From contig NC_043022.1 of assembly GCF_006345805.1 (NCBI RefSeq), forward strand, positions 21,948,001-22,012,000: DNA of 64,000 nt. The letters run 5' to 3'. The DNA is from Octopus sinensis (Eukaryota). The notes beneath the pieces are model-generated. The model made no database searches and was not told the origin of the DNA. It saw only the letters and a program-made list of their open reading frames with translations. The position numbers and the translations under genes are program-made. Below are positions 6,433 to 48,200 of the stretch, one piece after another. Positions within the stretch are counted from its first letter, which is position 1. Every line of letters begins with the position of its first letter.

Positions 6433-6534
6433 CTGTTCTAACTGCTGTATCTGACCAGCTTGGTCATCAAGTTCCTCTTCCTGTTCAGCAACCTTCATTG
6501 ATAGTTCATGTTTTGCTCTCTTTAATGCCATATA
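6433..6534 (-). CDS. MYO18A: Myosin-XVIII exon I (34 aa)
   Basis: tttcAG acceptor, CAG|GTATGT donor, 102 nt; YMALKRAKHELSMKVAEQEEELDDQAGQIQQLEQ (cf. DQEEELDEQAGTIQMLEQ). Confidence 0.96.
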
Positions 6535-11049: not shown

Positions 11050-12590
11050 ATTCACCCGGGGTGGGTTGAGCTGGCTTCATTCATCCTCAATGCTGCATCT
11101 CTCACAAATGCCGACCAGGCCTGGCGATTTGAGGCTAATGACCGTGTGATCTCCAACCACTCCTTATTCCAGCGGCGAACACCATAGATATGGGGGCCTA
11201 GGATGGGTTCCAGATCAGCTAGGTTTCTCGTTGTCCACCACATCGCTTTCGCCAACCCTGATTGGTTGGATCGTTCAGCAATCTTATCATTCTCATTCAA
11301 TATCCATGTTTTACAGCCATGCAATATCACACTTCATGCATGAACATCATACAATCTGCCCTTTATTTGCATAGAAAATGCCTTTGAAAGCAGCAGTAAT
11401 AGCTCTTTGAACTTTTCCCACCTTTCTTACACTTTTACAACACTCACTTCCAGTATTGTTTAGGCCACCAAAGTAACACCAGCTGCGAAATATCTTTAAA
11501 GTAACCTTCTGAGCATTTGAACTAGCAGACACTCTCTCTGCTAGTTACTCCTTTCCATCTACTGCATATAATGTCTCTTTTCTCTGTAAACCTGTTTGTG
11601 GAGTTGTTGCATCTCTTGTGCATCCACAGTTTACATTAGGTACACAATATAGAAGTCCTACCTACATATTTTCTACAAATAGAACGTGGACCCCCACCTA
11701 TCAATGACAGTTGAGATTTGTATTCTTTTCTAACACAATTATCTTTGTTAGGATTAGAAGAATGCTTGCTATTTTCTTTCTAGACTTCACATATCCTCAA
11801 AATCTAGTATTCATATTTTGTTATCAGTGGCATAGAATGAGTTTTGGCTGCTCTGTGTGGTAGCCAAATTGGCCATCTTCTTCCTTAAATGTAACATACC
11901 TTTGACTACAACAAACACACATATATAATGTAGTAGACCTATTTCTTTACTACCCACAAGGGGCTAAACACAGAGAGGACAAACAAACGGATTAAGTCGA
12001 TTATATCGACCCCAGTGTGTAACTGGTACTTATTTAATCGACCCCAAAAGGATGAAAGGCAAAGTCGACCTCGATAAATTAAGTACCAGTTACGCACTGG
12101 GGTCGATATAATCGACTTAATCCATTTGTCTGTCCTTGTTTGTCCTCTCTGTGTTTAGCCCCTTGTGGGTAGTAAAGAAATATATTTCTATTGAACCTTT
12201 TAAGCAATTGGGCCCTCATTTCTTAGGTGCTTTTACTGCCAATGATAGCCAATTTTGAATTCCTCACTTGAAGAGCTATAAGAGCCTGGAATAGACTAAG
12301 AACAAAGGACTAATGGATTCCTACATGCATTGAGCTTGTTGCTACCAGTGTGCTGGTTTTCACCGATTAAAGAATACTATATGCTGTTGAAAGTCTTCTC
12401 TAAGTCAACAAATACTAAATATAGCAGTTTTTTTTTCTTGACTAAAAAGTTGGCATCAGTGGTCCCACATCCTGGCACAAACCCAAACAGCATCTCATTT
12501 AAGCTTGCTCTCTCCCTGATTAGTTTTGCTATAACTTGCTCCACCACTTTTATGATTTGGTCCATCAGTTTAATGCCCTCGTAGTAACCA
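11050..12590 (-). mobile_element. Fragmented RTE-clade LINE(s)
   Basis: RT remnants FGFVPGCGTTDA...LVFVDLEKTF, CKLWMHKRC, ILHGCKTW, SNRQAWSAFV; interrupted by the inverted S2 dimer. Confidence 0.8.
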
Positions 12591-13355
12591 CATTCGAGCG
12601 TGATCGTTACCAACGTCACTTCACTGGCACCTGTGCCGGTGGCACGTGTAAAAAGATTCGAGCGAGGTCATTGCCAGTACCACCTGACTGGCCCCCGTAA
12701 AAAGCACCCGCAACACTCTCGGAGTGGTTGGCGTTAGGAAGGGCATCCAGCTGTAGAAACTCTGCCAAGTCAGACTGGAGTCTGATGCAGCCATCTGGTT
12801 TGCCAGACCTCAATCAAATCGTCCAACTCATGCTAGCATGGAAAGCGGACGTTAAACGATGATGATGATGATGATGATATACATACACACACACACACAT
12901 ACTTATTCAAACTCCATATCAAACACTTCCCCTAATCCACTGGAACATCAACAATCAGAAGTAGTAAGGACACCTCCCTTAAATAATATCCAACCAAGGA
13001 ACGATACTGCATTAAGAAGTCCAAGATATACTGTGTTGAACAAAAAATAAAATGAGATGGTCATGGTTGGAATAGTTGGCTCATAGATCACCTCAACCAG
13101 GGCTCACATGAAATGAAAGCAGGAAGTGGTTCCTGCAAGGACCATGGGGCTTATATAACAATGATTTCTGATTTAGACATAAGGCCCTCAGTTTTAAAGG
13201 GAGGGAGATTGGTTGGTATCATCAATCCCAGTACTAGACTGGCACTTTATCTTATCAACCCCAGAGGATGAAAAGCAAAGTTGATCTCAGATTTGAATGT
13301 AAAGAACCAGAATAACTATCATAAAGCCATTTTTTTTATGCTCTAGTGATTCTGC

Positions 13356-16194: not shown

Positions 16195-16293
16195 CTCTTT
16201 ATCATCTTTGCCACCAGACTCACTGAGATCTGCCAGTTCACGCTCCAGTCGTTCAATCTTCTCATTGCTCAGCTCATTGTCCATCTTCAGCTT
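16195..16293 (-). CDS. MYO18A: Myosin-XVIII exon H (33 aa)
   Basis: ttgcAG acceptor, GAG|GTAAGG donor, 99 nt, phase 0-0; KLKMDNELSNEKIERLERELADLSESGGKDDKE. Confidence 0.9.
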
Positions 16294-19146: not shown

Positions 19147-19679
19147 TTAAGGCTCATTGCAGTGGGCATAGATGAAACAGGAAGTCACAAGCTAAGAACT
19201 GGTTCCTGCTGGTTGTAAGATCAAACACCCTGGAAAGTTAACGGTCAATATAGGGGGTATAGACGACAGGCATTTGTCAAAGCAGTAGTAGACTGATAAA
19301 AAAATGGACACAAATGGACCTAGTGTCAATGGTGAACTCAGGAAAAGTGGCGATAATAGAAACATTTAGAAATTAATGTCCACAAAAAGCTGTAGAGATG
19401 GTAAAGATGGTGGTAGGAGTGTTAGAGGTGATGATGATGATGGTGAAGGTAGTAGTGGTGATGAGGAAGGTAATGATAGTGGAGGCAGTAGTAGCGATAG
19501 TGGTGACAGTGATTATGGTGGTGGAGGTGGTGGTGTTGGAGGTGACAGTCATGGTGGAGGAAACAGAGGTGATGTTGGCTGTTGTTATGTGTAAGCCAAA
19601 GTCTACCAGTCATTCTTGCTGTTCACTCAAGTGATAAACTGAACCACTGACTAACTTAATCTCTGTCATCAGCTCTCTC

Positions 19680-19703
19680 TCTCTCTATTATACATGTGTG
19701 TGC

Positions 19704-19756
<53 letters not shown>

Positions 19757-19777
19757 ACATACATACATACATACATA

Positions 19778-19810
<33 letters not shown>

Positions 19811-19944
19811 CATATATATAATATATATACATATATTATATATATATATACATATACATATACATATACATATATGTATATATATATATACATATATATA
19901 TACATATACATATATATAATATATATATACATATATATATATAC

Positions 19945-19977
<33 letters not shown>

Positions 19978-20018
19978 CATACATATATATATATAATACA
20001 TATATATATATACATATA

Positions 20019-20088
<70 letters not shown>

Positions 20089-20105
20089 CATACATATATA
20101 TATAT

Positions 20106-20136
<31 letters not shown>

Positions 20137-20252
20137 AATATATATACACACACACACATACATACATACATATATATTCATGCGCATATAAATATATACA
20201 GACATGTACATATATATACACAAATATAAGCATATACACACACATATATATA
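19680..20252. repeat. Compound (TA)n/(TACA)n microsatellite
   Basis: About 570 bp of TA/CA alternation. Confidence 0.98.
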
Positions 20253-21257
20253 CAGTGTTTATGCTAATTTTAACGATTTTTTTTAATGTCTCCTTTTTTA
20301 TCAGGAACAGCTTGAAGTATCAGTGAACGGGCAACGGCATTGGAGAGAATACAGATTGAAGTTGTAGGACTGGAAGCTATCTGAATATTGGCAAAGAGTG
20401 AGCACTGTAAAAGCTGGAAGAGGTAACATGGACAGTTGCAGCAGAAACTACGAAGCTGTACCGAGCAGGACAGGACACAGCAGGTATTCTGACTGCACCA
20501 GGCTCCAGTCTGATCTGGCAGTGTTTCTACAGCTGGATGCCCTTCCTAACGCCAACCACTCCGTGAGTGTAGTGGGTGCTTTTTACACGCCACCGGCACA
20601 GGTGCCAGGCAAGGCTGGCAACGGCCGCGATCGGATTGGTGCTTTTTATGTGCCACCAGCACAGAAGCCAGTCAAGGCAGCGCTGGCATAGCAATATTAT
20701 ATCTGTATATCATGATGTTGCCTATAAAGATAGGTATAGACATGTTCCAGAAAACAGCGATAACAGACTTTAAATATTAACTATGGAATTAAGGAGATTA
20801 TGGTAACTATCACAATCTCACGGATCTGATGATCAATGAAAGGTACGGGCACAACTGTGTGGTCTTGTGGGTGTGTAATGCATAGCCACCCAAACTCATC
20901 ACCCTTTATTGTTCGTCTTCCATGCTGGTATGTGTTGGACAAATTTACGGGATCTGACAAACTGGTGGACTGCACCAAGCTCAAATTTCTGCTGTGGCAT
21001 GATTTCAATGGCATTTCCTAAGCCAACAAATTTACAGTGTACTGGGTGCTTTTTTCATGGGTATATAGAATTACCCGAAGTGTACACACATATGGGTATG
21101 TAGAATTATTCATGGTGTACGAAGAGTATATTGTTACTTATACTATAGCAAAGTTTGTAGGTATATAGTGTATTAAAGTTATCTACTCATATTACAGATA
21201 TGGCTATGGGCTTATTAAAGGTAGTTTAGCATATATGCTCTTGAAGTTGATTGATGT

Positions 21258-23199: not shown

Positions 23200-23323
23200 A
23201 CTATTGGCTTGTTCCATAGAATACTTAAGGGCCTGGAGTTCTTCCTTTTCCCTCAGTAGCTTTTCTCTGAGAGATCGCTCTTCACGACACTCTTGCTGGG
23301 ACATGTTTAGTTCACTGTCAAAC
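23200..23323 (-). CDS. MYO18A: Myosin-XVIII exon G (124 nt)
   Basis: tctAG acceptor, AGT|GTAAGC donor, phase 2-0; (R)FDSELNMSQQECREERSLREKLLREKEELQALKYSMEQANS (cf. [27 protein letters not shown]). Confidence 0.95.
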
Positions 23324-26930: not shown

Positions 26931-27085
26931 CTTCTTTGCTTTCTTTCTAGGTCGTTATTGCGAGATGTTTGTTCATCAAGATGTCGCTTAATATCTTGCA
27001 TTTCAGCATTCAGTTTTGTGCATTTCTTCTTCTGACTGCACACCTGTTGACGTAGCGTTTCTTTCTCCTCTGTTGTCTCCTGATA
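26931..27085 (-). CDS. MYO18A: Myosin-XVIII exon F (155 nt)
   Basis: tgcAG acceptor, AG|GTACGT donor, phase 0-2; YQETTEEKETLRQQVCSQKKKCTKLNAEMQDIKRHLDEQTSRNNDLERKQR(R) (cf. [34 protein letters not shown]). Confidence 0.95.
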
Positions 27086-27830: not shown

Positions 27831-28653
27831 GACAGGCTTCTTTCAGTTTCCGTCTACCAAATCTACTCACAAGGTTTTGGTCGGCTCAAGGCTATAGTAC
27901 TAGACACTTGCCCAAGGTGCCACGCAGTGGAACTAAACCTGGAACCATGTGGTTCGTAAGCAAGCTACTTACCAAACAGCCACTCCTACGCCTGTGTGTG
28001 TTTGGAAAAGAAAATAAATTTGATAAAGCTACCAGAATGAGAGTGAGTGTGTGTGTGTGTGTGAAAAATGTGTGTAGGTTTGACATACGAGTAAATACTC
28101 AAAAAACATGAAGGGAAATAAAGAATAAAGGTCAACTGATGCAAGTGGAGGTTGACAAGGATAAGCTATTACAATGACCTTTTCCTAACAGCCTTTCACT
28201 TCAACAGCATTTTATGCCTCAATCCCTTCCATAACATGTTCTAGTTTTTTGTCTTTTTCATCTCCCATTCAATGTTTCATATAATTCTGCCTTTTTATTC
28301 ATTATTCACAGTTGTACACAAACTCAGGTTATCTCCCTTCATTTCCAACCCCCCCCCCCCATGCCATCTCACTAACTTTTATCTTTTACTTGTTTCAGTC
28401 ATTGGGACTGTCACCATATTCTAGCGACACCTTGAATGATTTTACTTGAAGAAATCTACTCTAGTATTTAGTTTTCTAAGCCTCATACTTACTCTATCAG
28501 TTTCTTTTACACAGCTGCTAAATACTGGGGATGTAAGCAAACCAACACTGGTTGTCATGCAATGAGCAGGGGAGACAAGCGCAAGCACACACACACACAC
28601 ACACAAAATGGGTTTTCACAGTTTCTGTCTGTCACATGATGTCAAGAAACAGA

Positions 28654-29797
28654 TACCTATTTCTTTACTGCCCACAAGGAGCTACACACAGAGGGGACAA
28701 ACAAGGACAGACAAACGGATTAAGTCGATTATATTGACTCCAGTGCGTAACTGGTACTTAATTTATCGACCCCCGAAAGGATGAAAGGCAAAGTCGACCT
28801 CGGCGGAATTTGAACTCAGAACGTAGCGGCAGACGAAATACCTATTTCTTTACTACCCACAAGGGGCTAAATGCAGAGGGGAGAAACAAGGACAGACAAA
28901 CGGATTAAGTCGATTATATTGACTCCAGTGCGTAACTGGTACTTGATTTATCGACCCCCGAAAGGATGAAAGGCAAAGTCGACCTCGGCGGAATTTGAAC
29001 TCAGAGCGTAGCGGCAGACGAAATACCTATTTCTTTACTACCCACAAGGGGCTAAATGCAGAGGGGAGAAACAAGGACAGACAAACGGATTAAGTCGATT
29101 ATATCGACTCCAGTGCGTAACTGGTACTTGATTTATCGACCCCCGAAAGGATGAAAGGCAAAGTCGACCTCGGCGGAATTTGAACTCAGAACGTAGCGGC
29201 AGACGAAATACCTATTTCTTTACTACCCACAAGGGGCTAATGCAGAGGGGAGAAACAAGGACAGACAAACGGATAAGTCGATTATATCGACTCCAGTGCG
29301 TAACTGGTACTTGATTTATCGACCCCCAAGGAGGATGAAAGGCAAAGTCGACCTCGGCGGAATTTGAACTCAGGCGTAGCGGCAGACGAAACCTATTTCT
29401 TTACTACCCACAAGGGGCTAAATGCAGAGGGGAGAAACAAGGACAGACAAACGGATTAAGTCGATTATATCGACTCCAGTGCGTAACTGGTACTTGATTT
29501 ATCGACCCCGAAAGGATGAAAAGCAAAGTCGACCTCGGCGGAATTTGAACTCAGAACGTAGCGGCAGACGAAATACCTATTTCTTTACTACCCACAAGGG
29601 GCTAAATGCAGAGGGGAGAAACAAGGACAGACAAACGGATTAAGTCGATTATATTGACTCCAGTGCGTAACTGGTACTTGATTTATCGACCCCCGAAAGG
29701 ATGAAAGGCAAAGTCAACCTTGGCAGAATTTGAACTCAGAACGTAGCGGCAGACGAAATACTGCTAAGCATTTCGCCCGGCGTGCTAACGTTTCTGC
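28654..29797 (-). repeat. Tandem array of six S2 SINE units (~185 bp), only one with a head
   Basis: Units start near 28654, 28838, 29023, 29208, 29390 and 29573; a single A-box head at ~29760-29797. Confidence 0.95.
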
Positions 29798-31262
29798 CCA
29801 CACACACCACGTACATCCACACATGCATATATAACAGGTTTCTTTCAGGTTCTATCTACCAAATTCACTTACAAGGCATTGGTCAGCCTGGGACTATATC
29901 AAAAGACACTTGCCCAAAGTCTCAAGGTGCTACACATGTTGGATTGAACTTGAAACCATGTGGTTACAAAGCATGCATCTAACCAACGCAATCATGCTTG
30001 TGCCTTTTCAACAATAAATATGTGTGTGTGTGTGTCTATGTTTTAATCAGCGTACTAAAAGACATATACCCAAAGTCCAAATAATCAATCTTTATTTACG
30101 TATACATGTGTGAGTGTGTGTGTGTACATATACATACACACACACACACACACACATATATATACATACATATATATACATACACAAACACATATACACA
30201 TATATATATGCAGGTGGCACGTAAAAAGCACCCACTACACTCACGGTGTGGTTGGCGTTAGGAAGGGCATCCAGCCGTAGAAACACTGCCTGATGAAGCT
30301 TTCCGGCTTCACAGACCCCAGTTGAACCATCCAACCCATGCTAGCATGGAAAACGGATGCTAAATGATGATGATGATACATACAGAGTCTATTTACAAAT
30401 TATATACTATTTATTTATTATTTCGTACTTTTGTTAGTTCTAGGTAAATGTTTTATCGTATCTTTAATTTTTTTCTATATGGTATGATTTAAGTATATCA
30501 TTGTTGAATTGCTACATGGTGGTTCTTTAATTTACACACACACGCACACTCAAGCCTCAGTCTATTGCCAATATTCTATATTCTAAGATTTTCCATAGCT
30601 GCACCTCTGTTATATTTTCTATCATATTCTCTAACTCAATCCTTTTTTGTTTTGACAATTTGTTCAATGAAACCTGTAGACTGAAACATGCTGCAGTTTT
30701 GTCACAGATCATTAAAATTAACTACTCTAAATATTCTCATTGATTTTACAGAGTGAGTCTTTTTGGTTGGTGATGGATACTAGTAATAGGGGGAGGAGAG
30801 AGAAAGGGAGAGAAGGGGAGGAAATGGGAAACAGAAGGGAGGTAAGTGGAGACAGAAGAGAAAGAATGAGAGTGGTGAGAGAGAGGTGGTGTTAGAGAGG
30901 GAATGTGAGAGTAACATACAGTGAGGGAGTGAGAGTCACTAGAAAATCTGCCAGAATAAGTGAAACAATAGAATGTTTACAAAATAGATTCAGTCTGACA
31001 TCTCTTACTTGCCATGTCTCTGCTTTATTCTAAAAGATGGGCAGAAGGGGTGGGAGTGTCAACTGATGATACTCTCAGGTCTGAGAGTACAAACAGATCC
31101 AAAAACCAAGTCTCTCTTTCTGGAAGGAATCAGCTATGTTCAGAGCTGGAGAGAGATGGCTACACCAAATCTATGAAAGAAATGAACAAGAGACACTGTG
31201 TGCCATGATAGTGTCTTTAGGACTACATCAAGGCAAAGAGAGAGAGAGAGAAAGAGAGAGAG

Positions 31263-32029
31263 TATTTCTTTATTCACCATAAGGTTGAGAAAAAGAGGGG
31301 ACAATATGGGGACAGACAAAACAAACATTGGGGTCAGGGCATCGAATGAGACGAAACATATGAATAAACAAACAATTAAAATATATACAATTAAATGAGG
31401 ATGCGTGATTAACAAAAAATGAAGTGGAGGACGTGGTTGACCCCACAAACCACATACTCACACTGAAGACTTTGCTTTCTCCTTTTTTACATTCTTGATT
31501 AAACTGGTTCTTTCACTCGCAACATACTTGCTATAGACTTCCATCTTTTACGAAACACACTTTGCGACAGGCATTTCTTCTCCAGCCTTATTTTTCGTTT
31601 CAAGTGGAAAACGAAAAAGTCGATTAGCTCGAGACTGGAGATAAACATGCCTGTTGCAATTCCTTTCACTCTGGTCTTCCATACTACTTCTTTCGCCACA
31701 GCAACTACCAAGAGAAAACAGGCTTGCTCCTCCCTATTCAGGGAGGTTGGCGGAACTATCTTAATTACAAATTCACTCGACAGTTGTACTCTTCTCGAAT
31801 GCGACAGCAGGTGTTCGACATAAGCCCAGAGTTCAGTCACCTTGGGGCATTGCACAATCGCGTGCAGGACAGTTTCACTGTCCCTCTCACATCTTGCACA
31901 AACCGACGAAGGTGCACACCCATGTCTAAAGAGCTTATCTCGAACTGGTAAAGCTCCTCTGTAACATTGCCAGGCCAGGGACTTCTGGTAATTATCCATA
32001 GGCCCCGGACAGAATGTTCTTTGGAACAG
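31263..32029 (-). mobile_element. L1/Tx1-clade LINE 3' fragment (ORF2 zinc knuckle + 3' UTR)
   Basis: LAWQCYRGALPV...CARCERDSETVLHAIVQC (CX2CX8HX4C)...KEVVWKTR...; UTR ends AATAAAGAAATA next to (CT)n; second 3'-UTR copy at 32881-33081. Confidence 0.88.
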
Positions 32030-33472
32030 GCTGGATGCCCTTCCTAACGCCAACCACTCCGTGAGTGTAGTGGGTGCTTTTTACGTGCCACCTGCACAGG
32101 TGCCAGACGAGGCTGGCAAATGACCATGATCGGATGGTGCCACCGGCACGGAGGCCAGTTGGGGCAGTGCTGGCAACGGCCACGTTCGGATGATTCTCTT
32201 ACGTGCCAGACAAAACAGTGCCATAAAACAGTGTCTCAATAATATATGTACATCTAACCTATGCAAGCATAGTGAAATGGATATAAAATGAACACACATA
32301 TGAGTGTATATGTCTATTTTATACATCGAAAACTTACTACAGACACACAGGTTGTATATATACAACCACATATATACACACTGAGATTCACACACAAAAC
32401 ACAAATTTAGTATTGATTTTGCTGTTATTTAATTTGACTGTTTCTCATCACAGAATGATGAGAAGATCACAAATTGAAGATGTTGAAAGCAAACTACTGC
32501 TGAGATCTTAAGCTCTTTACTACTGAAGGGTTTCTTTTTATACATGGAAGCTACTGAAAATAGAATCTACAAATTGCGACATGACAAACCATTTAAAAAA
32601 CAAATTTTGTACTGAATTGGCTGACTAATTAATTAAAGGCGGACTTAACTTGGGAAGACATCAGCCAGGTAAATAAACAGATATTTGACAAAACAACTGA
32701 CTTAACTAGCAGCAAGACAAATAAGGTTTATCTAAGCTCCTCTCATCCAGAACTTTCCTATAGCAGCAGCTTGGAAGGTAAAATTTTGGACTGGTTTGTT
32801 CAAACAGCAGTCAAGGACAAAATTGAAATTTCCAATAGGGGACAGTAACAAATGTGGTTTATGTGTTTACGATGAGAGAGTATTTCTTTATTCACCATAA
32901 GGTTGAGAAAAAGAGGGGACAATACGGGGACAGACAAAACAAACGTTGGGGTCAGGGTATCGAATGAGACGAAACGTATGAATAAACAAACAATTAAAAT
33001 ATATACAATTAAGTGAGAATGAGTGATTAACAAAAACAATGAAGCGGAGGACGCGGTTGACCCCACAAATCACATACTCACAGAGAGGAAATGGTTGATT
33101 GATCAACCTGGTAGAAATTGCAGTTAAATCCTGCTTTCAAATAAACTCACATTATGTAGTCTTAGATATGCAATGTGTGAAGAAAAGAAAGGATGATTGT
33201 GACTGGAAAATCTGATCATAGATCTGCTAGATGAATGTTCACCAGAAGTTAAAAGCAACAGTTATGTATGTGGCGATACAGACACAAAGAAGAGGGTGAC
33301 AGCGAGACACATGACAGTAACACAGGGGTTTGAGACACAGGGACGGTAGCACAAGTCAGAGAAACTAAAAAAGGGAACACAGGGATCTGAGAAACAAGAG
33401 TCAAAGAGACAGGAGGAGATAGAAAACAGATAAACAACAGTCAGGGAGATAGAGAAGATTGAAGCAGGAGAC

Positions 33473-33822
33473 ATTGAGACAGGTGTTAAACAGGGTCATT
33501 GAGACAGGTGTTAGACAGGGTCATTGAGACAGGTGTTAGAGAGGGTCATTGAGATAGGTGTTAAACAGGGTCATTGAGACAGGTGTTAGACAGGGTCATT
33601 GAGACAGGTGTTAGAGAGGGTCATTGAAACAGGTTAGACAGGTGTTAGACAGGGTCATTGAGACAGGTGTTAAAGAGGGTCATTGAGATAGGTGTTAGAG
33701 AGGGTCATTGAGATAGGTGTTAGGGAGGGTCACTGAGACAGGTGTTAGAGAGGGTCACTGAGACAGGTGTTAGAGAGGGTCATTGAGACAGGAGTTAGGG
33801 AGGGTCATTGAGATAGGTGGAT
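33473..33822. repeat. 25-bp minisatellite, about 14 copies
   Basis: Unit TTGAGACAGGTGTTAGACAGGGTCA; AGGTGTTA recurs at 33481, 33506, 33531 and onward. Confidence 0.95.
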
Positions 33823-33959
33823 ATTGAGACAAGAGTCAGTGAAACAGGGGTCGAGAAAACATGAGTCAATGAGATTGGGGTTATTGATATAGGGGATACT
33901 GATGCAAGAGACATTAACGCTGGGCTCAAGGGACAGAACAGTGAAATAGTAACAAATAC

Positions 33960-34087
33960 CCTTTTCTCTAGATGTCGCTTAATGTTCTGTTCCTGTTGTA
34001 GTTCTTCCTCGTGTTGATGTTGTAGTTGTTGTTTCAGGAAGTGAAGCTCTTTCCGGGATTTCTCGTAGCGTTCTTTGTAAACACTCT
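33960..34087 (-). CDS. MYO18A: Myosin-XVIII exon E (128 nt)
   Basis: ttacAG acceptor, AGG|GTATTT donor, phase 1-0 completing exon D's split codon; (E)SVYKERYEKSRKELHFLKQQLQHQHEEELQQEQNIKRHLEKR. Confidence 0.92.
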
Positions 34088-34194: not shown

Positions 34195-34684
34195 CGTCTC
34201 AAAACCCTGAAATGCTGTCAAGATGTTTTAATAACAGTAACAACAACAATAATATTGATAATAAGAATATAATCCACTACAATAACAGGTGTATTGATTA
34301 AAATGATGAAAAAAAGATGCAAGCAAATTCAAAACACAAAACCCCAGGACTTACACACGCACAACACCAAAAGGTGGAAGTGCTAGTTACTGCTTACATA
34401 TTAGGTAGAGAACCTCTGGAATTACAGACACAACCTACAGAAAATAATACTACTGGGTACTGGCCATAAATTATATAGAGTACCTTAGGACTTACACATA
34501 TACTCTTTCTCTTTTACTTGTTTCAGTCATTTGACTGTGGCCATGCTGGAGCACCGCCTTTAGTCGAGCAACCCAGGACTTATTCTTTGGAAGCCTAGTA
34601 CTCATTCTACCGGTCTCTTTTGCCGAACAGCTAAGTTACGGGGATGTAAACACACCACCAAGCGATGTTGGGGAGGGGGGGCAA

Positions 34685-34772
34685 ACACAGACACACAAAC
34701 ATATACACACACATACATACATATATGTGTATGTGTGTATATATATATATAATATATACATACATACATATA

Positions 34773-34806
<34 letters not shown>

Positions 34807-34816
34807 CATACATACA

Positions 34817-34852
<36 letters not shown>

Positions 34853-34998
34853 CATACATACATATATGTATATATATACATACATACATACATACATACA
34901 TATATGTATATATACATACATACATACATATATGTATATATATATATATACATACATACATGTATATATATACATACATACATACATATATACATACA

Positions 34999-35036
<38 letters not shown>

Positions 35037-35125
35037 AACATATATGCATATATATATACATACATACATACATACATGCATATATATATATACATACATA
35101 TATGCATATATATATACATATATGC

Positions 35126-35160
<35 letters not shown>

Positions 35161-35171
35161 AATATATACTC

Positions 35172-35206
<35 letters not shown>

Positions 35207-35246
35207 TACTCATATATATATATACACACACATACATACATATATA
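34685..35246. repeat. Expanded TA/TACA microsatellite inside one S1 SINE
   Basis: Flanked by the S1 tail (34507-34685) and S1 head (35247-35400) in register. Confidence 0.95.
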
Positions 35247-36226
35247 CGACGGGCTTCTTTCAGTTTCCATCTACCAAATCCATTCACAAGGCTTTGGTCG
35301 ACCTGAAGCTATAGTAGAAGACACTTATGCAAGGTGCCACGCAGTGGGAACGAACCCAGAACCATGTGGTTGGGAAGCAAGCTACTTATCACACAGCCAC
35401 TAGGCACAGTAGACATTTATGTACTCTACCATCAATACAACAGAACACAAAATCAAAACCAAATACCTCACATGCCCAAAGCACACAGAACTTGGTAATG
35501 CTGTCAAAGCATGACAAAAATAAAACCTATGAAAGAATAATGATTCTTTTTACTACGATCCTGAAATTTTGGGGGAGTGGGCGAGTCAATTATATCGACC
35601 CCAGAGCTCAAGGGTGCTTAATTTATTGACCCTGAAAGGATGAAAAGCAAAGTTGACCTGGGCAGAATTTGAATATACAGTCACCGAGAAGAAATGCTGC
35701 TGAGCAGAGCATTCTGTCTGGTATGCTTAATGATTCTGCCGGCCCACAACCTTAAAAAAAAAATAGTGATTTCAAATTCTGGCACAAGGCCAGCAATTTG
35801 AGGTAAGGGTTTAAGTGGATTACATTGACCCTAGTGCTCAACTAATACTTATTTTATTGACCCCGCTGAAAGGGTGAAAGGTAAAGTCAATATTGGCAGA
35901 ACTTGAACTTAGAATGTAAAGGTAGATGAAATGCTGCTAAGCATTTTGCCTGACATGCTAATGGTTGTTGCAAAGCATTTTGTCCAATGTGTTGATAATT
36001 CTGTCTCCTCACCACCACATTATTATTATTATTATTATTATTATAGTGGTTGGCTACACTCACAGAGTGGTTGGCGTTAGGAAGTGCATCCAGCTGTAGA
36101 AACACTGCCAGATCAGACTGGAGCCTGGTGCAGCCTCCTGGCTTCTCAGACCCCAGTTGAACTGTCCAACCCATGCTAGCATGGAAAGCGGACGTTAAAC
36201 GATGATGATGATATTATTATTATTAA

Positions 36227-36843: not shown

Positions 36844-36958
36844 CATCAGCTGTATCTTCTTCTGCATCACCATCAAATGAGGTTGCCTGCCAAAGACGAC
36901 ATTGCATCACTTCACGCTCCAGCTTCTCATTTTGTCGACGTGTCTGATTGTATTTACC
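36844..36958 (-). CDS. MYO18A: Myosin-XVIII exon D (115 nt)
   Basis: ccacAG acceptor, G|GTGAGT donor, phase 0-1; GKYNQTRRQNEKLEREVMQCRLWQATSFDGDAEEDTAD, with the acidic hinge seen in MYO18A (GEVDDDDA). Confidence 0.92.
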
Positions 36959-38385
36959 CTGTGGATGAAAGGTCACAGACACACTTCAGATAGTTGGTGA
37001 AATAATGTTGAATACAGACAGGCCTCTCTCCCTTTCTCTTTCATGTCATTGAGAAATGGAAAATGCAAATATTCAAATTTCATGTCACTAATAACCCCTC
37101 TCCTTCCACACAAATACTTATATTTACTTGTCCACTTACAAAGAAACGTCAGTTGTATATCCTACGTACATCCTGCAGAACACAGACTTTCCATCTTTAT
37201 TACAAAGAGTTAGTTCCCTTGCCTTGAGACTACTATTACCTTCTGAAAACATCACACTACATCACTGTCTATATACCAAGGGTGGGGGAAACTTTATAGA
37301 GTGGTGGGCAAAAATTTCCAAAGAAAAAGGTCCTCAGGCAGATCACAAGTTCTAACTCTCATATCTGTGTAAATCTTGTATATATCTATGTATAATTCGA
37401 TATACATTAATAAAGATAAGTTTAACACATTAAATTAACACGTAACATCTTCATTAATGTCACCACTGAATTTAGGAAGGTTTATATTACTTATGAGATA
37501 TTTATAAAAGGAAGGTTTATATTACTTATGAGATATTCTAAGAATACTTATGAGATATTCTATATTTTTCAGTTAATATAGTTGGGTCTCAAAGGGGTGG
37601 TACAAACCTAGTAATATGTGTTTTATAGTGAAAGCAAAATTTCCATTCAAATAGCAATTGCCGGACAATTTTCTGTTTGAGTCTAACTGTTTTAAGTCAT
37701 AGAAGAAATGTGACCTATGTCGAAAATAGGCATGGGAATATTGTATAAATTTTATAATTGAAAAATTTACATATTTTGTACATACGAGGCTATAGTAGAT
37801 GACACTTGACCAAGGTGTTACATAGTGGGACTGTACCCGGAACCATGCTGTTGGTAAGCAAGCTACTTATCACACAGCCACTCCTGTGCCTATACATATA
37901 TATATTTTGTTTTCATGAAAGCTGCATGGTAGCATCAATAACTACTTTGAAGGAATACTTCACACCTTTTCGGTAATGTTTCCACACTCAGAACATTTTG
38001 GAAGATTCTAGGATTTACAAAAATGTTTCATCTAGTAAACCACACCAGATTTTTAGGTGTTTTCACTCAATAAACACTCACAATGCCCGGTCTGGGGATC
38101 GAAACCGCGATCTTCCGACCGCGAGTCCACTGCCCTAACCACTGGGCCATTGCGCCTCCACATATATGTATATATATACTCTTTTACTTGTTTCAGTCAT
38201 TTGACTGCGGCCATGCTGGAGCACCGCCTTTAGTCGAGCAAATCAACCCTGGACCTTATTCTTTGTAAGCCCAGTACTTATTCTATTGGTCTCTTTTGCC
38301 GAACCGCTAAGTGATGGGGACGTAAACACACTAGCATCGGTTATCAAGCAATGCTAGGGGGAGAAACACAGACACACAAATGCAT

Positions 38386-38427
<42 letters not shown>

Positions 38428-38722
38428 TATACATACATATATACGACGGGCTTCTTTCAGTTTCCGTCTACCAAATCCACTCACAAGGCTTTGGTCGGCC
38501 CGAGGCTATAGCAGAAGACACTTGCCCAAGATGCCATGCAGTGGGATTGAACCCGGAACCATGTGGTTGGTTAGCAAGCTACTTACCACACAGCCACTCC
38601 TGCGCCTATATATATATATATGACAAGCTTCTTTCAGTTTCCATCTACTAAGTCATAAAAAAACAAAAATTTTCTTTAGACAAATGTTTTAAAATGTCAT
38701 AATATCAAGCAACATGAATTAC

Positions 38723-38842
38723 CTGGACATCCTTGAGTTCCTTTTCAAGACGCATTCGTTCAGCAGTTTCTTGCTCAAGCATTTCAGATGCATGGCTGGT
38801 GGTTGTTGCTTCCTCTGCGAGGTCAGCGTTTAATTCTGAGAG
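38723..38842 (-). CDS. MYO18A: Myosin-XVIII exon C, duplicate copy 2
   Basis: Identical to 39482..39601 including splice sites; offset 759 bp. Usage in mRNA unproven. Confidence 0.75.
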
Positions 38843-39035
38843 CTACAATAACAAAACAGCAACGTGTTTTTAGCAACAATAAAATCCATGCAATACTGGC
38901 CATAAAAGCACCATATATCTACAAGGTCTAATAGTTTTATCACTAAGATATAATACAGTAGCGAGTGTGTGTATAGGACATATATCGTAAGAGTTGACAG
39001 GAGTATGTGTATGTGTGTACATAAGCAAAACTTAC

Positions 39036-39125
39036 TCTGGAGTCAAGTCGGTCACAGTGTAACTTGTATTCGTTCTTCTCACGTTCAACTTTTTCAAATT
39101 TCACCTTCAGTTGTTCCAATTCAGC
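39036..39125 (-). CDS. MYO18A: Myosin-XVIII exon B, duplicate copy 2
   Basis: Identical to 39795..39884 including splice sites; offset 759 bp. Usage in mRNA unproven. Confidence 0.75.
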
Positions 39126-39169
39126 CTGAAATACAACAGAGATCTTGGGTCACACAAAGATATATATAT

Positions 39170-39200
<31 letters not shown>

Positions 39201-39481
39201 GACAAGCTTCTTTCAGTTTCCGTCTACCAATCCACTCACAAGGCTTTGGTCGGCCCGAGGCTATAGCAGAAGACACTTGCCAAAGATGCCATGCAGTGGG
39301 ACTGAACCCGGAACCATGTGGTTGGTTAGCAAGCTACTTACCACACAGCCACTCCTGCGCCTATATATATATATATATATGACAAGCTTCTTTCAGTTTC
39401 CATCTACTAAGTCATAAAAAAACAAAAATTTTCTTTAGACAAATGTTTTAAAATGTCATAATATCAAGCAACATGAATTAC

Positions 39482-39601
39482 CTGGACATCCTTGAGTTCC
39501 TTTTCAAGACGCATTCGTTCAGCAGTTTCTTGCTCAAGCATTTCAGATGCATGGCTGGTGGTTGTTGCTTCCTCTGCGAGGTCAGCGTTTAATTCTGAGA
39601 G
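39482..39601 (-). CDS. MYO18A: Myosin-XVIII coiled-coil exon C, copy 1 (40 aa)
   Basis: ttgtAG acceptor, CAG|GTAATT donor, 120 nt, phase 0-0; LSELNADLAEEATTTSHASEMLEQETAERMRLEKELKDVQ (cf. human [40 protein letters not shown]). Confidence 0.93.
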
Positions 39602-39794
39602 CTACAATAACAAAACAGCAACGTGTTTTTAGCAACAATAAAATCCATGCAATACTGGCCATAAAAGCACCATATATCTACAAGGTCTAATAGTTTTATC
39701 ACTAAGATATAATACAGTAGCGAGTGTGTGTATAGGACATATATCGTAAGAGTTGACAGGGGTATGTGTATGTGTGTACATAAGCAAAACTTAC

Positions 39795-39884
39795 TCTGGA
39801 GTCAAGTCGGTCACAGTGTAACTTGTATTCGTTCTTCTCACGTTCAACTTTTTCAAATTTCACCTTCAGTTGTTCCAATTCAGC
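39795..39884 (-). CDS. MYO18A: Myosin-XVIII coiled-coil exon B, copy 1 (30 aa)
   Basis: tttcAG acceptor, AGA|GTAAGT donor, 90 nt, phase 0-0; AELEQLKVKFEKVEREKNEYKLHCDRLDSR (cf. human [30 protein letters not shown]). Confidence 0.93.
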
Positions 39885-39948
39885 CTGAAATACAACAGAG
39901 ATCTTGGGTCACACAAAGATATATATATATATATATACATATATATAG

Positions 39949-40669: not shown

Positions 40670-41092
40670 CAATAAGAATCACAGTCGAACCAATTCTACT
40701 ATATGGCTCAGAAACCTGGACATTATCAAAGAAGCTTGAGAGACGGTTGGATGGAACTCCTTATGAGAGCTCAAAATCTCTCGTGGAAGAGTCATCCAGC
40801 CAAAATGCAAATATATGGGAAACTACCACCTGTATCATCTCTTGTGAAAGGTAGAAGAGTCCAGTTTGCTGGACATTGTTGTAGAGCTGAAAACGAGGTA
40901 ATTTCTACTCTTCTTCCCTGGAAGCCATCTAATCATGATATCAGAGGGCGCACACTCTCCTACACTGATGTAATCTCCAGGGATCAGGCATCCAGCAACA
41001 GGATCTCCGTAATGCCATGATGGACCGTGAAGTCTGGCGTAACATAGTAAATTCCATTGTCTTGACCACGGTCGAACAATGATGATGATGAT
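40670..41092 (+). mobile_element. RTE/RTEX-like LINE 3' fragment with (TGA)n tail
   Basis: VEPILLYGSETWTL...RRVQFAGHC...MMDREVWRNIV. Confidence 0.85.
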
Positions 41093-42419
41093 GAAGCACA
41101 TTCCAGATTCATTTTCCACTGTCCTAAGCACATTCCAGATGCATTTCCACTGTCCGAAGCACATTCCAGATGCATTTTCCACTGTCCGAAGCACATTCCA
41201 GATGGATTTTCCACTGTTCGAAGCACATTCCAGATGGATTTTCCACTGTCCGAAGCACATTCCAGACACATTTTCCACTGTCCGAAGCACATTCAGATGC
41301 ATTTTCCACTGTCCGAAGCACATTCCAGATGCATTTTCCACTGCCCGAAGCACATTCCAGATGCATTTTCCACTATCCGAAGCCCATTCAAGATGCATTT
41401 TCCACTGTCTGAAGCACATTCCAGATGCATTTTCTGCTGTCTGAAGCACATTCCAGATGCATTTTCCACTGTCCAGATGCATTTTCCACTGTCTGGAGCA
41501 CATTCCAGATGCATTTTCCATTGTCCGAGGCACATTCCAGATGCATTTTCTACTGTCCGAAGCACATTCCAGATGCATTTTCTACTGTTCGAAGCACATT
41601 CCAGATGCATTTTCCACTGTCTGAAGCCCATTCAAGATGCATTTTCCACTGTCTGAAGCACATTCCAGATGCATTTTCTGCTGTCTGAAGCACATTCCAG
41701 ATGCATTTTCTGCTGTCTGAAGCACATTCCAGATGCATTTTCCACTGTCCAGATTTTCCACTGTCCGAAGCACATTCCAGATGCATTTTCCATTGTCCGA
41801 GGCACATTCCAGATGCATTTTCTACTATCCGAAGCACATTCCAGATGCATTTTCTACTGTTCGAAGCACATTCCAGATGCATTTTCCACTGTCTGAAGCC
41901 CATTCAAGATGCATTTTCCACTGTCTGAAGCACATTCCAGATGCATTTTCTGCTGTCTGAAGCACATTCCAGATGCATTTTCCACTGTCCGAAGCACATT
42001 CAAGATGCATTTTCCACTGTCCGAAGCACATTCCAGACGCATTTTCCATTGTCCGAGGCACATTCCAGATGCATTTTCTACTGTCCGAAGCACATTCCAG
42101 ATGCATTTTCCACTGTCCAAAGCCCATTCAAGATGCATTTTCCACTGTCTGAAGCACATTCCAGATGCATTTTCTGCTGTCTGAAGCACATTCCAGATGC
42201 ATTTTCCACTGTCCGAAGCACAATCAAGATGCATTTTCCACTGTCCGAAGCACATTCCAGATGCATTTTCCATTGTCCGAGGCACATTCCAGATGCATTT
42301 TCTACTGTCCGAAGCACATTCCAGATGCATTTTCCATTGTCCGAGGCACATTCCAGATGCATTTTCTACTGTTCGAAGCACATTCCAGATGCATTTTCCA
42401 CTGTCCAAAGCACATTCCA
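41093..42419. repeat. 32-bp minisatellite (~41 monomers) with higher-order structure
   Basis: Unit GATGCATTTTCCACTGTCCGAAGCACATTCCA; variant CCCATTCAAG recurs at 41383, 41627, 41899 and 42123. Confidence 0.98.
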
Positions 42420-43153: not shown

Positions 43154-43297
43154 CTCTTTGTTTTTTAGTTCCTCCTCAGTTTTGTGGACATTAAGTAGAG
43201 GTTTGACCCGGACATACAATCGCCACCATGGCCAGTCTCGGATAAGCATGAATTTTCTCACATTCTTCTGTATACAGCTAATGGCTGTCTGTTGTAG
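43154..43297 (-). CDS. MYO18A: Myosin-XVIII exon, post-IQ neck / start of coiled coil (48 aa)
   Basis: ttcCAG acceptor, GAG|GTCAGT donor, phase 0-0. LQQTAISCIQKNVRKFMLIRDWPWWRLYVRVKPLLNVHKTEEELKNKE contains the myosin WPWW..L...V.PLL motif and matches the class XVIII segment I recall (human [35 protein letters not shown]). Confidence 0.96.
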
Positions 43298-45202: not shown

Positions 45203-45363
45203 AAGAACACAAGCGGAGTTTTAAAATTCATAACAGCTGTTTCAGCAGCATTTTTAATGATGAACATTTTGATTGCATCATGACAAGAATTCAATCCACC
45301 ACCATCAGGTGATTTTACACAACCTACTCACTGAAATACCTAGATTCTAATAAACCCTACAAC

Positions 45364-45364
<1 letters not shown>

Positions 45365-45398
<34 letters not shown>

Positions 45399-45406
45399 AC
45401 ACACAC

Positions 45407-45461
<55 letters not shown>

Positions 45462-45817
45462 CATACATATATATATATATATATACATACATACATATAT
45501 ATATATACACATACATACATACATATATATATATACACATACATACATACATATATATATATACACATACATACATACATATATATATATACACATACAT
45601 ACATACATATATATATATATACACACATACATACATACATATATATATACACATACATACATACATATATATATATACACATACATACATACATATATAT
45701 ATATACACATACATACATACATATATATATATACACATACATACATACATATATATATATACACATACATACATATATATATATACACATACATACATAT
45801 ATATATATACACATACA

Positions 45818-45864
<47 letters not shown>

Positions 45865-45987
45865 CATACATACATATATATATATATATATCACATACAT
45901 ACATATATATAATATATACACATACATACATACATAATATATATATATATACACATACATACATACAATATATATATATATATACAC

Positions 45988-46018
<31 letters not shown>

Positions 46019-46119
46019 CACATACTACATACATATATATATATATATATATACACATACATACATACATATATATATATATATACACATACATACATAC
46101 ATATATATTATATATATAT

Positions 46120-46154
<35 letters not shown>

Positions 46155-46256
46155 CACATACATAATATATATATTATATATACACATACATATATATATA
46201 TATATATACACATACATATATATATATATTACACATACATATATATATATATATAT

Positions 46257-46287
<31 letters not shown>

Positions 46288-46429
46288 CACGTACATATAT
46301 ATATATATACACGTACATATATATATATATATACACGTACATATATATATATACACATACATATATATATATATATACACATACATATATATATATATAT
46401 ATACACATACATATATATATATATATATA

Positions 46430-46466
<37 letters not shown>

Positions 46467-46759
46467 CATATATATATATATATATATAACATACATATAA
46501 TATATATAACACATACATATATATATATATACACATACATATATATATATATACACATACATATATATATATATAACACATACATTATATATATATACAC
46601 ATACATATATATATATATATATATACACATACATATATATATATATATTATACACATACATAGATATATATATATATACACATACATATATATATATATA
46701 TACACATACATATATATATATATACCATACATATATATATATATATATATATAATATAC

Positions 46760-46791
<32 letters not shown>

Positions 46792-46954
46792 ATATATACA
46801 TAGATACATATATATATACATACATACATATATATACATACATACATATATATACATACATACATATATACATACATACACATACATACATACACATACA
46901 TACATACATATACATACATACATACATACATACATACACACATATATATATACA
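45365..46954. repeat. ~1.6-kb compound (TA)n/(TACA)n microsatellite
   Basis: Directly visible. Confidence 0.98.
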
Positions 46955-48200
46955 CAGGGTGGGGAAGCAAAAACTTGGAATATTTTGGAAGCCTTATTTT
47001 TCATATATTCCTGAGTGTAGTAAATACTAAAATATGGTTTTCTATTTCAAGGTGGAGGTATATAGAGTTAATTGAAGCAGAAGTTCCAGTCAAACAATCT
47101 AACATGTCCAATTAAGAAGCCAAGAGACAACGCACTGCAGATTTGCTTCATGCCAGGGTTGCAATTAGACATCTTGCTCAGACTGTTGGAGCCGCTGTGA
47201 GAACTGTTTAGAAATGTTAAGAACCAAATGATGGATACTGGAAGCATCAAGAGAAAGTAAGGAAATGGAGACAAATAAAAACAAAGAGAATGCATTTCTT
47301 AACCCTTTAGTATTCAGATTATTCTGTCAAATGTAATGCTTATGTAATCAAATTGTTTTGAATTAATCATGCAAAGACATTGTACTATTGAAATTTTGAA
47401 GATGTGATTGCTTATTCTTAGAATGACATTGTAGGATAAGTGTGCAAAGCCAGATCTGGCCAGTTTGAACATAGAACAAGTAGACTATTTTGGCCGGATA
47501 TGGACGGTTTAAATGCTAAAGGGTTAAATCTCTCAAAGCCAAAATTTCGAAAGATCCAACAACATCCATGAGAAAACTGTCTATGGACATGAAAGTTGAT
47601 CCAAAGACCATCAGAAATGCTGTACACACTGATTTACATTTGGGGTCATATGTGAGGACCCCAAGACACCTATTGACTCATGCAATGAAAGCCAGAAAAG
47701 TGTTGTGAGACCTGAAGCACAATAGACAAACTGACAAAATCTTTTCAGATGAAAATATCTTTACCGTTGATGCTGTTTTAAAACATTGCAATGATGCCTC
47801 TTTATTTGTTCAAGTCTGGGGAAAAAGTGGGGGCTGATGTTTATCATAAAGTCCTGCGGTATAAGGTTTTGCCTTGGATGAAATCTAACAACTCCAACAG
47901 TAATTATGTGTGGACCCAAGATGGTTCTCCTGCTCATACGGTGAAGAAAGTGGAGAAATCCTGTAAAGACAACTTTGCCGATTTTGGCCTGCTACTTCTA
48001 GCTTTCTTCCAGTCCAGACTCGAACTCCCTGGACTATGCTGTATAGGGTAAATTGGAGCACTCTATCAACAGAACTTTGCATCCAAGTTTTGTTCATTTT
48101 AAGCAAATCCTGAGGGAAGAGTGGGACAACATATCTGAGTACTTCATCATGAAGAGATGTGACACCTTCAGTGCCAAACATAGGATAGGCTAAAATGCAG
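46955..48200 (+). mobile_element. Tc1/mariner DD37D(maT)-like transposon relic
   Basis: 5' CAGGGTGGGG terminus; KRQRTADLLHA, DPTTSMRKL, IFSDENIFTVD, WTQDGSPAHT, SSPDSNSLDY remnants. Confidence 0.85.
47303..47523. mobile_element. piggyBac-like MITE (221 bp) nested in the DD37D relic
   Basis: TTAA at 47299-47302 and 47524-47527; CCCTTTAG / CTAAAGGG termini; related 3' part at ~51310-51443. Confidence 0.88.

Follow-up and report, generated by a model that had tools for sequence, protein, structure and literature searches.

Tandem exon duplication is a general route of gene evolution, as illustrated by the alternative exon sets of the Drosophila Mhc gene. Repeat-mediated intragenic partial tandem duplications are represented by the Alu-mediated KMT2A-PTD and by DMD exon duplications, and exon blocks vary in copy number in long modular proteins such as nebulin, in its triplicate region, and titin. 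Both tandem exon duplication and repeat-mediated intragenic duplication are well-known phenomena, as is false duplication in genome assemblies. False duplications stem mainly from heterotype duplication; most have a gap or a bad or unsupported gap fill between the copies, and some are joined by wrongly filled sequence and lack a visible gap (Ko et al. 2022, PMC9516828). Genuine tandem duplications within single contigs exist too, and the criteria for false duplication are read depth at the haploid level and haplotype k-mers that are single-copy in either of the copies (PMC9516828). In the case of myosin 18A, the rod enables co-assembly with myosin 2 (bioRxiv 10.1101/2020.02.12.944488).

Within the window (the whole stretch of Octopus sinensis DNA that was analysed, 64 kb in length), a 759-bp unit containing two exons, B and C, of a putative class XVIII myosin gene is present twice. 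As in the Drosophila Mhc type, the repeated exons are adjacent and head-to-tail, with intact splice sites and in frame; in contrast to known functional tandem exons, which are diverged and mutually exclusive, they form an identical two-exon block whose joint inclusion would be feasible. The locus is also comparable to KMT2A-PTD and DMD duplications, in which intronic direct repeats misalign, exons are duplicated and a hybrid repeat is found at the junction, but the repeats involved here would be (TA)n microsatellites of 30–60 bp rather than 300-bp SINE bodies, and the product would keep the reading frame and be benign for the structure, not disruptive. As in nebulin and titin, duplication of an exon block would alter the length of a filament protein by whole structural repeats, although the blocks in those genes are several kb long and encode actin-binding super-repeats, whereas the block in the window comprises 759 bp and 10 coiled-coil heptads. 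The copies likewise resemble a heterotype false duplication in being near-identical, repeat-bounded neighbours with SNP-like differences, with the exception that the most frequent hallmark of this class, a gap between the copies, is absent (PMC9516828). If real, a heptad-exact duplication of a two-exon block at the head end of a myosin-XVIII rod, absent in the relatives examined, would be new.

The head-to-tail repeat lies where the original prediction had placed it and cannot be a product of chance. At an offset of 759, self-identity without gaps over 38380–39200 was 79%, compared to ~30% at neighbouring offsets, and a direct-repeat search returned a 300-nt pair with 100% identity and a spacing of 759. 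Gapped local alignment of 38401–39189 with 39160–39947 gave 784 aligned bases with 8 mismatches and a few short indels, the two copies of the unit being 99% identical. These three comparisons bear out the predicted 759-bp two-exon tandem unit. Copy 1 (38401–39159, minus strand) is the downstream copy by gene orientation and copy 2 (39160–39918, minus strand) the upstream one. Read on the plus strand, each unit opens with a TA tract, a 163-nt SINE, a short TA tract and a 33-nt fragment of an older SINE; these are followed by exon C, exon B (with 193 nt of intron between the two) and 34 nt of intron sequence from the upstream side of B.

Both ends of the unit lie in TA tracts, in line with the prediction, as defined by three (TA)n tracts located with Tandem Repeats Finder: TA1 at the left boundary (38384–38443), with one ATAAT and several CA interruptions; TA2 at the junction between the copies (39160–39200); and TA3 at the right boundary (39919–39947), which is followed by unique sequence (agttaatcc...). 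Copy 1 holds part of TA1 at its left end, and copy 2 starts with TA2. The junction tract TA2 is a hybrid, in which the left flank of TA3 (cacacaaag) and a first (TA) run are followed by the ATAAT interruption of TA1, with no filler DNA. No N characters occur anywhere in the 64-kb window, including between the two copies.

Along the minus strand of the window runs a series of short exons bounded by good splice sites. The neck exon (43154–43297, minus strand; ...IQKNVRKFMLIRDWPWWRLYVRVKPLLNVHKTEEELKNKE) encodes the last IQ motif, the WPWW head-rod junction and the first 14 rod residues, and ends in phase 0 with a complete last codon at its donor (AAAGAG|GTCAGT). Exon D (36844–36958, minus strand), the next rod exon after C, starts in phase 0, between codons (acceptor CCACAG|GGT, codons GGT AAA). 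Further rod exons on the same strand are E (33960–34087), F (26931–27085), G (23200–23323), H (16195–16293), I (6433–6534) and J (814–924).

A HMMER scan of the 396-residue exon concatenation against 1.84 billion representative proteins yielded 356 matches below 1e-10. The best full-length match was XP_022343138.1, ‘unconventional myosin-XVIIIa-like isoform X3’ from Crassostrea virginica (59% identity over 394 residues), which carries PDZ, SH3_Myosin-XVIIIa, Myosin_head and IQ domains and a weak Myosin_tail_1 domain. Other named matches were XP_021925686.1, a termite myosin-XVIIIa, and a whitefly Mhcl cluster, with insect myosin-XVIIIa/Mhcl proteins sharing 45–50% identity with the neck and rod exons. 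The IQ motif, the WPWW-type head-rod junction and the subsequent heptad coiled coil are all present in the window gene, and the neck exon, B and C align gaplessly to residues ~812–931 of solved myosin-II heavy chains, a region that spans the last IQ motif and the head-rod junction and extends over the first 85 residues of the rod. For class II rods we would expect a match to Myosin_tail_1, and the short rod pieces of the window gene gave none. A class II myosin was rejected on the basis of the named best matches and the domain architecture of the closest relative. The same evidence assigns the gene to the class XVIII myosins, as originally predicted, with its PDZ/SH3/motor part judged from the oyster relative. 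No motor or PDZ exons were found in 43.3–64 kb by tblastn with the oyster protein, so that either the intron before the neck exon exceeds 20 kb or these exons are too short or too diverged for tblastn. The window gene is similar in neck and rod sequence to class XVIII myosins, the class of vertebrate MYO18A/B and insect Mhcl, but the 70-residue block encoded by exons B and C is single in the relatives examined and present twice in the window gene.

All four predicted exons are present in the two copies, although the predicted order B-C-B'-C' did not hold as written: the gene lies on the minus strand, with the transcript order B'(39795)-C'(39482)-B(39036)-C(38723). The upstream copy contains exon B' (39795–39884, minus strand; 90 nt, AELEQLKVKFEKVEREKNEYKLHCDRLDSR) and exon C' (39482–39601, minus strand; 120 nt, LSELNADLAEEATTTSHASEMLEQETAERMRLEKELKDVQ), and the downstream copy contains exon B (39036–39125, minus strand; 90 nt) and exon C (38723–38842, minus strand; 120 nt), which are identical to B' and C', respectively. 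Comparison of the exons and of their acceptor and donor flanks between the copies confirmed that exons and splice sites are identical, as had been claimed. In both copies, exon B is flanked by the acceptor TTGTATTTCAG and the donor GTAAGT and exon C by the acceptor TTATTGTAG and the donor GTAATT, the acceptors of both exons being of the polypyrimidine/AG type. Each exon is phase 0-0, in agreement with the prediction, and the neck and D boundaries are also in phase 0. Between C' and B, the duplication has created a new GT-AG intron of 356 nt (39126–39481, minus strand), which holds the junction tract TA2 together with the SINE and the older-SINE fragment of the upstream copy.

Exons B and C together encode 70 residues, exactly ten heptads. 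In a register scan, hydrophobic residues fell on the a/d positions of a single register throughout the neck exon, B, C and D, and this register is also unbroken in the doubled form neck-B-C-B-C-D, in which the novel C-to-B junction is seamless; the claim that the 70 residues preserve the heptad register thus stands. The sequence at this junction, GGATGTCCAG|GCTGAATTGG, is impossible in a single-copy gene. The rise of a coiled coil is 0.148 nm per residue, and 70 residues therefore correspond to ~10.4 nm, consistent with the gain of about 10 nm originally proposed. The B-C block begins 14 residues past the proline that marks the head-rod junction, so that the extra length would lie at the head end of the rod.

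Each copy of the unit includes a SINE in gene orientation or its sister: S1 (38444–38606, minus strand), which lies in gene orientation with a (TA)n tail, and its sister S2 (39200–39361, minus strand). These are accompanied by the 33-nt 3' fragment of an older SINE, F (38622–38654, minus strand), and its twin F' (39381–39413, minus strand). Box A-like and box B-like motifs are visible by eye in S1, while neither ARAGORN nor Rfam called a tRNA in the SINE head, and all Rfam matches on the TA tracts were far under gathering scores. Alignment with seven other copies in the window revealed that S1 and S2 have three derived bases in common relative to the family consensus. Two independent SINE insertions were therefore rejected, and S1 and S2 descend from one insertion that was copied along with the exons. 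The SINE also carries a consensus 5' splice site (GTGG|GTAAGT; 38581–38589 and 39336–39344, minus strand), seen by eye after a TA-run...AG, and a 19-nt SINE mini-exon is conceivable in both the C-to-D intron and the new C'-to-B intron.

Outside the SINE/TA part, the sole difference between the copies is in the B-C intron (A at 39002, G at 39761), which matches the single intronic difference of the original prediction. Six further mismatches lie in 38436–38547. An eighth mismatch (39180/39938) falls in the right-end TA tract of each copy. The mismatches are unevenly spread, with 7 in 147 aligned bases compared to 1 in 631 (Fisher p = 5e-5), equivalent to a divergence of about 4–5% in 38401–38547 and 0.16% in the other 631 nt. 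This unevenness is attributable to four of the mismatches (38436, 38444, 38448 and 38449), which form one cluster that renders the S2 tail identical to the neighbouring fragment F. The S2 tail itself (39182–39221, compared with 38426–38474 and 39362–39410) is 96% identical to fragment F and 90% identical to the sister S1, and the F-like cluster may reflect micro gene conversion, CpG decay or mis-polishing. Copy-specific derived states are found in S1 at 38547 and in S2 at 39282, in a 1-nt deletion and in the cluster 39192–39205; such changes either arose after the duplication or pre-existed between two parental alleles. Excluding the TA tracts, there are 6 substitutions in ~680 nt, or 4 events (~0.6%) when the F-like cluster is counted once, and the resulting inter-copy difference of 0.6–0.9% is compatible with alleles and with a young pair of paralogues alike. 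The exons show 0 changes in 210 nt, where 0.5–1.8 would be expected from the remainder of the unit. This number is not significantly low, and selection holding the exons identical was rejected on this basis.

Among the relatives examined, one B-C block is the normal state. The closest is UniParc UPI0006955963 (415 aa), which is 98% identical to the window exons and aligns gaplessly to query residues 1–292. It contains the block once (...NKE-B-C-GKYNQ...), and its B, C and D match those of the window residue for residue. Since the first 123 residues at its N-terminus are repeat-derived, this sequence is a gene-model fragment from a very close relative, presumably another octopus, and its single copy weighs lightly because a tandem of 99% identity could have collapsed if that assembly was made from short reads. 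The locus L002, from another invertebrate, shares exon layout and exon sizes with the window gene, with a single exon each for the neck (48 aa), B (30 aa), C (40 aa), D, E and F, and exactly one block is present in 67 of 67 relatives that match B-C and are 700 residues or longer. A protein word-index search with the 70 residues returned only exon-C fragments of other animals. Exact look-up of 18 window ORFs (including the junction-spanning ORF) in public collections, a search with the antisense ORF of exon B, aimed at short-read contigs from related species, and metagenome DNA scans with an exact octopus-type pattern and a degenerate codon pattern gave no match.

We give an even chance to the hypothesis that the repeat is a real, young germline tandem duplication within the class XVIII myosin gene, and put real duplication of any kind, all variants summed, at or marginally above even. 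The plus-strand order of the ancestral locus would have been (TA)n - SINE - exon C - intron - exon B - (TA)n; mispairing of its TA tracts, which lay 759 bp from each other, would have led to duplication of everything between them by unequal crossing-over or by replication slippage/template switching, an event leaving a filler-free hybrid TA tract at the junction. This scenario is supported by the 99% head-to-tail identity, the TA boundaries, the hybrid TA2 and the derived bases common to S1 and S2, and by the presence in each SINE copy of its own derived changes. The intact exons, splice sites and phases and the continuous heptad register are further arguments in its favour, as is the lack of any N in 64 kb although kb-scale microsatellites are resolved. 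No other near-identical TA-flanked duplication occurs within the 64-kb window, which therefore gives no sign of a systematic artefact. Two observations argue in the opposite direction: the uneven spread of mismatches speaks against a simple duplication of a single age, and the single state of the block in the very close relative, in L002 and in the 67 proteins speaks against a real duplication.

The structural features do not separate a real duplication from an artefact, as a heterozygous (TA)n-flanked bubble traversed twice in assembly would yield the same arrangement, and the hybrid TA2 fits unequal crossing-over and an unrolled haplotype bubble in the assembly graph equally well. We regard a heterotype false duplication as a serious alternative, with a probability somewhat short of even. 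Under this explanation, the animal would have one copy of the unit on each of two haplotypes differing in the SINE/TA part and at 39002, and the assembler, a gap closer or a contig join would have set the two alleles end to end via their (TA)n flanks. One and the same low-complexity repeat brackets the unit on both sides, a setting that suits a double traversal of a bubble or the joining of overlapping contig ends without merging, and the substitutions (~0.6–0.9%) are clustered in a hypermutable SINE/microsatellite stretch in an allele-like manner. The single-copy state of all relatives examined is also consistent with this explanation, and the heterotype class is both the chief source of false duplications and one in which some cases lack a visible gap (PMC9516828). 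However, no gap or N separates the copies or occurs elsewhere in the 64 kb, and the window resolves microsatellite blocks >1.5 kb, suggesting long reads able to span a 1.5-kb structure. The absence of a second case within the window is a further point against it.

An older real duplication, in which the exon-bearing part was homogenised by gene conversion and the SINE end escaped, is very improbable. Such a history would account for the unequal divergence of the two ends (about 4–5% in 38401–38547 compared to 0.16% in 631 nt), but the cluster at 38436, 38444, 38448 and 38449 is explicable by one micro-conversion or by CpG decay, and a relative with 98% identity has one copy.

Should the young germline duplication be real, the expected mRNA would be neck-B-C-B-C-D, given the complete splice signals on both exons and the phase 0 of all boundaries. 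The expected default is constitutive inclusion of all four exons, since splice signals and near flanks are the same in both copies, the new intron is a GT-AG intron of 356 nt and every combination of exons would be in frame. Reading of the sequence revealed no barrier to joint inclusion of the kind provided by a short intron, U2/U12 incompatibility, a frame shift with NMD or competing RNA pairing. The protein would gain 70 residues, or 10 heptads and ~10.4 nm, from 14 residues past the head-rod junction, and the head and N-terminal PDZ module would move ~10 nm away from the rod segment responsible for co-assembly with myosin 2. The remaining rod, which in myosin 18A is the driver of co-assembly with myosin 2, would stay unchanged.

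The original prediction also raised the possibility of a ‘length-switchable’ myosin, which finds no support in the sequence, as the splice signals do not differ among the four exons and joint inclusion is in frame. It is most doubtful that a real duplication acts as a regulated length switch, with splicing including or skipping one B-C pair to give two rod lengths. The sole support for such a switch is that the exons are symmetric (phase 0-0), so that skipping any B-C pair would restore both frame and heptad phase. Against this, the identical exons, splice sites and near flanks give a regulator nothing to distinguish, selector sequences that could tell the pairs apart are absent from the identical copies, and the introns are ordinary (193 and 356 nt, GT-AG). 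In addition, no exonic change has occurred since the event, and a second block or an alternative exon is absent in all relatives examined. That the duplication is both real and expressed, with a rod ten heptads (~10 nm) longer at the head end than in any animal examined and possibly also a short form in which B-C is skipped, is considered unlikely.

A real duplication would be a clean example of a coiled-coil motor protein lengthening by whole heptads through one microsatellite-mediated event, and would make available a naturally occurring variant in the rod length of myosin 18, a protein that relies on its rod for its part in mixed filaments with myosin 2. If also expressed, it would provide a natural experiment on the stand-off of the non-motor head/PDZ module from mixed myosin-2 filaments. 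If the repeat is instead an artefact, a TA-flanked unit has been written twice into a gapless assembly and the gene model is inflated by 70 residues, an error that annotation pipelines would miss because frame and heptads stay intact.

Several other repetitive elements were observed in the window. One repeat lies to the left of the duplicated unit, at 38162–38329. A 32-nt minisatellite (GAAGCACATTCCAGATGCATTTTCCACTGTCC; 41080–42400), with ~40 units of ~91% identity and spurious long ORFs on both strands, is located in the 3.3-kb intron that separates exon B' from the neck exon, and a 25-nt minisatellite (33397–33893) starts ~70 nt past the exon E donor (33960). At 19669–20336, 34600–35300 and 45340–47004, compound TA/TG/CA microsatellite blocks as long as 1.6 kb occur without N, and their full resolution is a hint of a long-read assembly. 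A tandem array with a period of 185 bp is located at 28586–29761, with some units 98–99% identical, and its units are similar to a dispersed element that also occurs near 52.7 kb, 54.2 kb and 56.8 kb. Two direct repeats of 207 bp (31256–31462 and 32874–33082), which share 95% identity at a distance of 1.6 kb, border an ORF that encodes a zf-RVT domain (31499–32053, minus strand), and the ORF and repeats are probably part of a retroelement. Transposon remnants occur within the myosin introns: a weak reverse-transcriptase match (RVT_1, under Pfam's threshold) was found at 12377–12619 on the minus strand, and the N-terminus of a Mos1-type transposase (HTH_48, E = 1e-21) at 1682–2149 on the plus strand.
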